From Schizochytrium sp. TIO01 (lineage: Eukaryota; Protista; Bigyra: Labyrinthulomycetes), in assembly GCA_004764695.1 (NCBI GenBank), contig SMSO01000004.1, positions 2,258,397 to 2,322,396 of the forward strand: a DNA stretch of 64,000 nucleotides, given 5' to 3'. The notes beneath the pieces are model-generated. The model did no database searches. It worked only from the letters and a program-made list of their open reading frames with translations, and was not told where the DNA came from. The translations under genes were made by a program, and so were the position numbers. Numbering within the stretch: position 1 is the stretch's first letter; each line of letters opens with the position of its first letter. Below, in pieces: positions 61,631-63,577 of this stretch.

Positions 61631-62583
61631 GTATGAACTACATTTTCTTATCAAAAGGGAAAGATATTAATCATCGAAGGGTACCGTTGTAACCCTGGTG
61701 CAATTTGCAACATGATAGACGTGATGCTTTAGAAAAAAAGAAATTAATATTATGTTTTTTTTACTTTGAAAGTCATTTCTTAGTTTCTCATATTATTAAT
61801 AAGGAGAAAGACCTGAGTTTAGTAGTGTTCTAACTCTATGAAAAGAAAAACGAGAAATTTTCTAGAAGAACCACTCGATAGCCCATTACTTGTTGAGATG
61901 ATCACATTCGATTCATGAGAGAAAAGCTTCTCGCAAGCTTGAGAAATGAAGCTGGAGGTTATCACTCTATTTGTTAGCAGGACAAAGAATCAATTGTTTA
62001 GTATAAGATTCATTTTCTCAACAACGGGAAAATATATTAATCATGGAATGGTAACGTTGGAAAGCTGTTTCAATTTACATTAGGGAAAATGTCTTGATTT
62101 AGAAAAATAAAACTATGATTATGATTTTACTGACCTTTAAAAGATATTTTTTGGTCTTTCATATTAATAATAGGGGGAATGAACCGAAATTAGTAGTGTT
62201 CTAACTTTATCAATGCAATAACCAGAGCATTGCTACAAGCACCATTCGATAATTCATGAACTGTTAAGATGCGCGCATTTGATTTATGATAAAAAATATT
62301 CTTGCAAGATTGAGAAAAAAAACATCAATCTGGCACTCTAATTGTTAGCAGGATATATAACAAAATGTTTAGAACAAGAATAATTTTCTCAAAAACCGGG
62401 TTATCTATTAATCATCGAATGGTACAATTGGAAACAGGCGTCACTTTGCAACAGGGTAGATGCGTTTGCTAAGAGAAATTAAAATTATATTTATGTTTTT
62501 ATTGACTTTCCAAAGTTATTTCTTAGTTTCTCCTATTATTATTAGGGAGAAGGAACCGAGTTTAGTAGTTAACGCAATCAAAA

Positions 62584-62947
62584 TGTCAAGAGATAATCTA
62601 TATATGGGACCGGGGTATACTAGGTATCGACGAGTGGTCATTAGTCACGCCTTTTTATAGCCCCTTAACAGATTAAGAGTCAAATAGCTGAAACTCTAGG
62701 AGATAGAGTTGCCGTATGTTGGTCCCGGGTTCGATTCCCCCATGATGTAAGTGCCTGGAAAAAGAAGGACTTACTGGGGGGTAGGGGTGTCCTATTCCTG
62801 CTGGGATGTCGAATCAGTCTCTAACCGAAATATGAACCTTTCGCCCAGAGAATGGGGGGGTGTCAAGAGATAATCTATATATGGGACCGGGGTATACTAG
62901 GTATTGACGAGTGGTCATTAGTCACGCCTTTTTATAGCCCTTTCACA
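62584..62947 (+). mobile_element. TRIM-like element, copy 3
   Basis: LTRs 62584-62670 and 62861-62947; PBS GATTAAGAGTC 62671-62681; PPT AGAGAATGGGGGGG 62847-62860; TSD CAAAA (62579-62583, 62948-62952). Confidence 0.9.
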
Positions 62948-63577
62948 CAAAAAAGTAGGTAGAACTTTTCCACAAGAACCACTCGGTAGCTCGATCATGG
63001 CTAAGATGGCCACATTTGCTTGATGAGAGGAAATCTTCTTGCAAGCTACAGGGAACAGGTCTTGATTATCACTCTAATTTTCAGGAGGACATAAAATTAA
63101 ATGGTAGGCATAAGGTTCATTTGCTCAACAAATGAGTCACCTACTAATCATGGAGTGGTACTATCGGAAAGCTGCTGAGCTGTACGACAAGAAACCTGTC
63201 TTGATTAAGAAAAATTAAAACTATGTTCAAGTTTTTATTGAACTTTGAAAATTATTTCTTAGTTTCTCAAATTACTAATAACGAAAAAAGGCAAACTTTG
63301 TAGTGTCATAACCCTATCAAACAAATAGGTAGAACCTTTCTACAAGCACCACTAGAACGCTTCACAACTCAACAACAATAAACGTTGAATTATGGTGAGA
63401 GTATAGTTTTACAAATTAGACATAAGACATAAGTACTTCCATCAAATTATATATTGTTCTTATTGAAGTCTCCCATATCCACCAATGTCAGCAGGCGCAT
63501 AAAAACTTTTTATTAAAAAAAAATATTTTTAATTTTTCATAAAAATATTTTTATACCAAAACCATAATAAACAATCA

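Follow-up and report, generated by a model that had tools for sequence, protein, structure and literature searches.

A miniature LTR retrotransposon family in the subtelomeres of Schizochytrium sp. TIO01, with a probable half-tRNA-Lys primer site and a candidate copia partner

Anatomy, copies and insertion sites of the 364-bp element

A 364-bp repeat near the chromosome ends of the labyrinthulomycete Schizochytrium sp. TIO01 was found to be a mobile element and not a satellite. The unit is almost certainly a non-autonomous long terminal repeat (LTR) retrotransposon of the type known as terminal-repeat retrotransposon in miniature (TRIM). Its family is young, recently mobile and restricted to the subtelomeres, with a plausible Ty1/copia element as its partner. 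Taken as a whole, our account, which we consider probable, is that of a non-autonomous TRIM that is primed by one half of a tRNA-Lys, mobilised by copia proteins and inserted into subtelomeric DNA. The repeat was recognised in a stretch of 64,000 nucleotides (GenBank assembly GCA_004764695.1, contig SMSO01000004.1, positions 2,258,397 to 2,322,396 of the forward strand), which is referred to below as the window and which holds three copies.

The unit consists of an 87-bp LTR, a 190-bp non-coding internal domain and a second 87-bp LTR, with TG...CA ends. The LTR termini (5' TGTCAAG and 3' (A/C)ACA) are common to the three window copies, and GATTAAGAGTC adjoins the 5' LTR, just as AGAGAATGGGGGGG adjoins the 3' LTR, with zero gap. 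The TG...CA LTRs, target-site duplications (TSDs) of a fixed 5 bp, a primer-binding site (PBS) combined with a purine tract, the non-coding interior and a length of less than 1 kb are all characteristics of a TRIM. A preliminary description of this DNA had called the element very small; at 364 bp it lies at the low end of the TRIM size range, within that range, and the wording holds only in a relative sense. The features of the three copies are the following (window coordinates).

62584-62947, plus strand: copy 3, whole element
62579..62583, plus strand: left TSD of copy 3, CAAAA (same 5 nt at 62948-62952)
62584..62670, plus strand: 5' LTR of copy 3, 87 bp, TGTCAAG...TTAACA, with a TATA-like CTATATATGG at LTR nt 15-24
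62671..62684, plus strand: putative PBS of copy 3, GATTAAGAGTCAAA, a 14/14 complement of host tRNA-Lys(CUU) nt 27-40
62671..62860, plus strand: internal domain of copy 3, 190 bp, non-coding
62720..62743, plus strand: sense-strand look-alike, in copy 3, of the variable loop and T arm of tRNA-Lys(CUU)
62847..62860, plus strand: polypurine-type tract of copy 3, AGAGAATGGGGGGG, next to the 3' LTR, kept in all units with one A/T variant
62861..62947, plus strand: 3' LTR of copy 3, 87 bp, 84/87 identical to its own 5' LTR
62948..62952, plus strand: right TSD of copy 3, CAAAA
55317..55680, minus strand: copy 1, complete element, ~300 bp downstream of the 28S rRNA gene (5' LTR 55594-55680, internal domain 55404-55593, 3' LTR 55317-55403)
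55312-55316 and 55681-55685: TSD of copy 1, CGTTT on the element strand (AAACG on the plus strand)
61234..61630, plus strand: copy 2, rearranged element without TSD (35-nt 5' LTR fragment 61234-61268, 5' LTR 61269-61355, internal domain 61356-61544, 3' LTR 61545-61630)

The places of the three copies (55317-55680 on the minus strand, 61269-61630 and 62584-62947), the direct repeats of about 87 bp (TGTCAAG...ACA) with a purine tract before the 3' LTR, the different TSDs of copies 1 (AAACG) and 3 (CAAAA) and the non-coding nature of the unit had all been put forward in the preliminary description, and each was found as described. No open reading frame (ORF) of more than 40 aa lies inside the 364-bp element, and the fold of the U5-internal region is not more stable than that of shuffled sequences (z = -0.16). 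The two LTRs of copy 1 are identical (87/87). Copy 2 is considered rearranged, since it carries an extra 35-nt fragment of the 5' LTR and lacks a TSD. The three copies are not private to this chromosome end: contig C36 has all of them with the same flanks (at 27859, 33812 and 35127), so that a duplicate of this chromosome end must exist. The segment 54000-64000 of the window has a near-identical twin at C36:26359-36990, with the same TRIM copies, flanks and TSDs.

The copy census covered the window's own 64-Mb genome, in which copies were sorted into sites by their flanks. It yielded at least 33 full copies of 96-100% identity and at least 10 LTR-only matches, which represent solo LTRs. The full copies occupy about 20 distinct sites, 19 of which show perfect 5-bp TSDs, every one different; given a chance of 1/1024 for one perfect 5-bp TSD, this is far above chance. 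Four distinct solo-LTR sites also have TSDs (GTTAA, GTACC, TTACT and AAGAC), and the remaining solo LTRs are without TSD, as expected from recombination between elements. Two loci are tandems of the form LTR-int-LTR-int-LTR (int: internal domain) with one TSD pair each, a form that is known in plant TRIMs (PMC4528315). A long element that shares the TRIM LTR was considered and rejected: the LTR-only matches are solo LTRs, and the nearby copias carry LTRs of their own, of 470 or 582 bp.

Pre-insertion sequences of 160 nt were rebuilt from the left flank, one TSD and the right flank, and matched to the genome. Four such empty sites match other chromosome ends ungapped over the 160 nt, with 100% identity for C13:7285784 and C33:1977200 and 99.4% identity for C24:27388 and C32:1456. 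Copy number, TSDs and empty sites, now surveyed genome-wide, bear out the independent integrations that had been claimed from two window copies. Since both LTRs are identical in 25 of the 31 units, most insertions appear to be young. The PBS is invariant in 31/31 units, and two sub-variants of the element are found at several sites each.

It could be argued that the family is a fossil, the copies of which stem for the most part from chromosome ends that were duplicated and homogenised, and not from continuing retrotransposition. Whole chromosome ends are indeed duplicated pairwise (C3 = C36, C6 left = C6 right, C13 = C24, C16 = C33), for several copies a counterpart with the same two flanks exists on another contig, and the homogenisation of chromosome ends is stressed in the genome paper on Aurantiochytrium limacinum MYA-1381 (bioRxiv 10.1101/2023.06.15.545109). 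We consider a fossil family improbable, in view of the ~20 different sites with different TSDs, the identical LTR pairs, the empty counterparts at 100% flank identity, the occurrence of each sub-variant at several sites, and the LTR junctions in contigs of other strains with flanks that were not found in this genome.

At 18 of the 20 distinct TRIM sites the flanks match the LORE-TEARS arrays of the window (listed in the last section) or its post-28S spacer. Since LORE-TEARS-type DNA makes up ~1% of the genome, the subtelomeric enrichment is very large. Most TRIM loci, including 'internal' sites of large contigs, also hold telomere-type runs, and the 'internal' sites for that reason look like chromosome ends that were joined within contigs. 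One TRIM lies in telomere-like repeats (TSD ACCTA), and another has inserted into an LTR of the copia with 470-bp LTRs (C34:1887, TSD TAGAC). A clustering of insertions in telomere-proximal DNA is known for Ty5, where it results from targeted integration.

With known TRIMs the family shares the short terminal direct repeats, a short non-coding interior that reaches from the PBS to the polypurine tract (PPT), the 5-bp TSDs, the solo LTRs, the LTR-sharing tandems (as in maize Wukong) and, probably, the dependence on an autonomous element. It differs from them in its host, a labyrinthulomycete stramenopile; in its putative PBS, which corresponds to the anticodon arm of tRNA-Lys(CUU) and not to the 3' end of initiator tRNA-Met; in its confinement to subtelomeric arrays; and in an interior that contains, in sense orientation, the T arm of the very tRNA by which the element is presumably primed.

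Primer site and host tRNA-Lys(CUU)

tRNA genes were called with ARAGORN at the loci that hold the reverse complement of the primer site. At least 25 tRNA-Lys(CUU) genes with the same T arm are present in the genome, for which reason the proposed primer tRNA should be abundant. A tandem array of 14 such genes is found at C35:885900-888700, with a period of ~208 bp; except for the tRNA itself, the spacer upstream of these arrayed genes is not similar to the TRIM. In the host tRNA-Lys(CUU) the anticodon stem is TTTGA/TCAAA and the loop is CTCTTAA. The 14 nt right after the 5' LTR, GATTAAGAGTCAAA, form a perfect complement of its canonical nt 27-40, and none of 2000 shuffles reaches the score of this 14/14 match. 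The T that follows the 14-mer could pair with G26 as G-U. The preliminary description had claimed an 11-nt site complementary to the anticodon arm of tRNA-Lys(CUU); alignment with the host gene upholds the assignment and extends the match to 14 nt.

Genome-wide, the full 14-mer was found in the TRIM copies, on the antisense strands of tRNA-Lys genes and in the four copies of one copia family, and in no other place. The sequence GATTAAGAGTC occurs at ten fetched loci that have no tRNA. The AAA extension is absent there and the count of these leftover matches agrees with that of a reversed-pattern control; they look like chance.

The first base of the PBS pairs with C40, which places the 3' end of the primer at nt 40. 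In the hemiviruses (Ty5, Osser, 1731 and copia) cDNA synthesis begins at the 3'-OH of nucleotide 40, within the anticodon stem-loop (PMC1181622), and since the primer end falls at nt 40 in both, the register of the TRIM is that of the hemiviruses. According to the ICTV the usual primer of pseudovirids is initiator tRNA-Met, and Hemivirus is defined by the short tRNA segment that is used, not by the tRNA species (PMC8515867). The tRNA that matches the TRIM is Lys(CUU) and not initiator tRNA-Met; given the usual primer, Lys(CUU) has to be regarded as a variant of the usual case. With the hemiviral Ty1/copia elements (copia, Ty5, 1731, Osser; PMC1181622, PMC8515867) the TRIM thus shares a putative PBS for the anticodon stem-loop, a predicted start at nt 40, 5-bp TSDs and a candidate partner with the copia gene order, whereas it differs in the tRNA and in encoding nothing.

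Judged from the sequence match, half-tRNA-Lys priming of the TRIM is very probable. Tca2 of Candida, which is primed by a fragment of tRNA-Arg, offers a precedent for a half-tRNA other than Met. The mechanism itself is of a known type; the variant lies in the proposed priming by Lys(CUU) and in the thraustochytrid host.

Could the 14-nt match be something else than a half-tRNA primer site, with another RNA or self-priming taking its place? Self-priming does exist, in Tf1 (PMC5371799). In the TRIM, however, the match to tRNA-Lys(CUU) is complete from the first base after the LTR and stands in the hemivirus register, the site is not only invariant in 31 units but also kept in a copia copy of which the LTR has diverged to 91-93%, and a TGG-type site for the 3' end of a tRNA was not found in the element. 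Alternative priming therefore seems very improbable.

A candidate copia partner and the T-arm look-alike

The dependence on an autonomous copia had been proposed from the window, and a candidate with the same primer site was indeed found. Copia families were located in the genome by matches to the Pfam domain RVT_2, and several families are present. One of them is a Ty1/copia of 5,986 bp with 582-bp LTRs, the ends TGTCGGAG...CTTGTCA (that is, of the TGTC...CA type) and the 5-bp TSD GAGAG, which is represented by four full copies and ~6 solo LTRs. The two subtelomeric copia families that matter here are located and organised as follows.

C8:145674-151699; C21 (two copies); C36:5010550-5016457: full copies of the 5,986-bp copia (n = 4)
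Pol_BBD 387-472; gag_pre-integrs 553-601; SH3_retrovirus 776-853; RVT_2 1122-1342: Pfam domains of the 5,986-bp copia
C12:91000-100999; C26:13000-22999; C33:4842000-4851999: loci of the second copia family

Each of the four copies of the 5,986-bp copia has an open frame of 1671 aa; counted from a GTG start, it comprises 1664 aa in one copy that was read. The integrase lies upstream of the RVT_2 reverse transcriptase (RT) and the whole is flanked by LTRs, which is the order of Ty1/copia (Pseudoviridae). Directly behind its 5' LTR stands GATTAAGAGTCAAATAAGCTTGAA, in agreement with the LTR-PBS junction of the TRIM at 24 of 26 nt (0/2000 shuffles). This match runs ~10 nt beyond the stretch that is complementary to the tRNA, which suggests a common ancestry or a common cis signal. 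Apart from the TRIM, no element in the genome but the 5,986-bp copia has the 14-mer; both elements start with TGTC, end with CA, carry a run of G immediately in front of the 3' LTR and are flanked by 5-bp TSDs. Copies of this copia lie in the TRIM-bearing subtelomeric arrays, and, within telomere-like repeats, one solo LTR of the family is separated from a TRIM by 12 bp. On these grounds the 5,986-bp copia is rather likely to be the helper of the TRIM. An origin of the TRIM by simple internal deletion of this copia was rejected, as only the LTR-PBS junction aligns.

Another helper could be responsible instead, be it the copia with 470-bp LTRs, a further copia or an extinct one, in which case the 5,986-bp copia would have no more than its primer tRNA in common with the TRIM. 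The second subtelomeric family (5.9 kb; LTRs of 470-474 bp, the pairs 99.8-100% identical; ORFs of 1685-1695 aa) is the one with an LTR in which a TRIM is nested, and its LTR end TTCAACA resembles the TTAACA of the TRIM about as well as the CTTGTCA of the 5,986-bp copia does. However, the sequence behind its LTR, GGTTATTGGCC..., differs from the Lys site, no occurrence of the TRIM primer-site motif was detected near any other RVT_2 match, and the junction match with the 5,986-bp copia extends past the tRNA-complementary part. A different helper is for these reasons held to be fairly unlikely.

With the 5,986-bp copia as the preferred partner, the life cycle of the TRIM may be pictured as follows. 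The element would be transcribed from its 87-bp LTR, and its RNA would be packaged into particles of an autonomous Ty1/copia, for which the 5,986-bp copia, e.g. the copy at C8:145674-151699, would be the likeliest source of proteins. A 5' fragment of tRNA-Lys(CUU), cut within the 3' strand of the anticodon stem so that nucleotide 40 is its last, would anneal to the 14-nt GATTAAGAGTCAAA just past the 5' LTR and prime the minus strand, and the plus strand would begin at the purine tract, rich in G, that precedes the 3' LTR. The DNA would then be inserted by the copia integrase with a 5-bp duplication, nearly always into subtelomeric spacer arrays, after which recombination between LTRs would yield the solo LTRs and the LTR-int-LTR-int-LTR tandems.

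Several points weigh against this account. The body of the TRIM LTR is not related to that of the 5,986-bp copia, which also speaks for a different helper, and the similarity on the PPT side is not significant (109/2000 shuffles reach it); the main grounds for choosing this partner are consequently the primer site, the terminal nucleotides, the length of the TSD and the location. Part of the copy number reflects duplication of chromosome ends (C3/C36, the C6 ends, C13/C24 and C16/C33) and not transposition, and the subtelomeres are homogenised here. The subtelomeric bias could mean retention and not targeting. Finally, the data consist of assembled contigs. They establish the anatomy, the copy number, the TSDs, the empty sites, the complementarity to the host tRNA and the primer site that the TRIM has in common with the copia, and transcription, packaging, tRNA cleavage and the source of the proteins are inferred.

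The internal domain holds a second piece that resembles tRNA-Lys(CUU). In most copies the sequence of internal nt 50-73 (62720-62743 in copy 3) is TGGTCCCGGGTTCGATCCCCCCAT, a sense-strand match of 21/24, as measured on copy 1, to the variable loop and T arm; copy 3 shows one further difference, T for C at 62736. The B-box of the look-alike, GGTTCGAT(C/T)CC, is intact, and the stem is down to 3 pairs. All matches to the 23-mer in the genome, at up to 3 mismatches, lie in TRIM copies or tRNA-Lys(CUU) genes, and none lies in another tRNA; the captured piece therefore comes from the same tRNA as the PBS match. It is absent from the 5,986-bp copia. A pattern of PBS followed by B-box gave no matches in a metagenome scan. 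An embedded tRNA gene was rejected as an explanation: ARAGORN and Rfam call none, and only a 13-nt T-loop match with E = 0.72 was obtained. In the same region an inverted repeat (62737-62781; CCCCC-ATGAT-GTAAGT ... ACTTAC-T-GGGGGG) is predicted to form a hairpin, which takes in the 3' half of the look-alike.

The intact B-box raises the question of whether the unit is a tRNA-derived element transcribed by RNA polymerase III (Pol III), similar to a short interspersed nuclear element (SINE), with flanking direct repeats that are coincidental. A partial A-box-like TAGCTGA is found 43 nt upstream, and a T5 run in the LTR could end Pol III transcription. However, a Pol III start near the A-box would fall in the primer site and give a transcript without R-U5, a poly(A) or LINE-type tail is lacking, and only the T arm is tRNA-like, the Rfam tRNA model giving no match. 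The TG...CA ends, PBS, PPT, fixed 5-bp TSDs and solo LTRs form the signature of an LTR element, and a SINE-like nature of the unit is hardly credible.

For the TRIM, the simplest origin of the T-arm piece would be a template switch onto the packaged primer tRNA. A more far-reaching possibility is that the internal domain was built by an RT template switch onto packaged tRNA-Lys(CUU) and that the T arm and B-box are now functional, which we regard as speculative and unlikely. The T-arm copy might in that case bind TFIIIC or another tRNA-binding factor at the chromosome ends, or might alternatively aid the co-packaging or selection of the primer tRNA. If true, the TRIM would carry a working piece of its own primer and would stand, as a living intermediate, between LTR elements on the one side and SINEs derived from tRNA on the other. 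A functional T arm would fit the old proposal that tRNA-Lys SINEs were derived from strong-stop DNA. A comparable capture, of catalytic RNA, is seen in the retrozymes, TRIM-like elements with hammerhead ribozymes. With the Cassandra TRIMs, which have 5S rRNA sequence in their LTR (PMC12486564), the element shares the combination of a miniature LTR element with a piece of small RNA and a Pol III-type box; it differs in that the piece is a tRNA T arm (B-box), is located in the internal domain and not in the LTR, and appears to come from the element's own primer tRNA.

Occurrence in other samples, significance and chromosome-end setting

The element was found nearly unchanged in contigs of runs from 12 studies, under 7 organism labels, and also in contigs of an aquaculture metagenome and a fish-gut metatranscriptome. 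A 264-nt contig of the latter spans 62583-62842 of the window, which, as an assembled contig, is not proof of transcription. In one run the LTR junction runs on into the flank of copy 1. In two other runs the LTR adjoins flanks that are absent from every fetched locus, and a genome-wide search with one of these two flanks gave no match; the foreign flanks suggest strain-specific insertion contexts.

In the literature we found neither a report of a TRIM in labyrinthulomycetes or thraustochytrids nor a published description of the 364-bp family, and the thraustochytrid genome papers give the LTR content as bulk percentages only. The present analysis describes for the first time, at the level of a family, a mobile element of thraustochytrids that appears to be active; these protists are industrial producers of docosahexaenoic acid and a model for unusual chromosome ends. 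The LORE-TEARS subtelomeric arrays act as a landing zone for retroelements, and tRNA-Lys(CUU) would join the short list of half-tRNA (hemivirus) primers, with a matched pair of a TRIM and an autonomous copia. Since A. limacinum can reportedly be transformed, this pair makes it possible to test the cutting of the tRNA at nt 40 and the selection of a non-coding RNA for packaging. Because its insertions are polymorphic, the 364-bp element can be used as a strain marker, and the embedded T arm of the presumed primer may bear on the origin of tRNA-derived retroposons.

The chromosome end on which the three copies lie has the following further features (window coordinates).

49486-55014, plus strand: complete 18S-5.8S-28S rRNA unit (Rfam)
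38611-38729, minus strand: 5S gene (Rfam)
56412-57946: tandem array with a period of 411-412 bp, matching LORE-TEARS group 1
58019-58850: tandem array with a period of 532 bp, matching LORE-TEARS group 3
~59136-63356: tandem array with a period of 362-371 bp, matching LORE-TEARS group 2
~63580-64000 (window end): telomere of TTAGG repeats

In A. limacinum MYA-1381 the chromosomes end in TTAGG telomeres, with the rDNA transcribed towards the telomere at a distance of ~9 kb, a 5S gene on the opposite strand ~10 kb further inward, and LORE-TEARS arrays with periods of ~406, 529 and 366 bp (bioRxiv 10.1101/2023.06.15.545109). LTR elements are not mentioned in that paper, which stresses the homogenisation of the chromosome ends. 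The thraustochytrid origin that had been suggested for the window agrees well with this plan: the TTAGG telomere, the telomere-facing subtelomeric rDNA and the spacer arrays all match it.

The telomere of the window has an inner block of variant TAAGG repeats (~63625-63697), preceded by mixed AGGTT/AGGTA units. Elsewhere in the genome, inverted subtelomeric pairs with telomere-type runs between or beside them were observed in large contigs (C33:1977200-1980720, C13:4036852-4038072 and C24:5808068-5809286), which represent either head-to-head assembly joins or interstitial telomeres. Further inward in the window, a tRNA-Gly(GCC) gene (37726-37796) lies near the 5S gene, and two tandem tRNA-Leu(CAG) genes (27086-27165 and 27312-27392) are found 226 bp apart.

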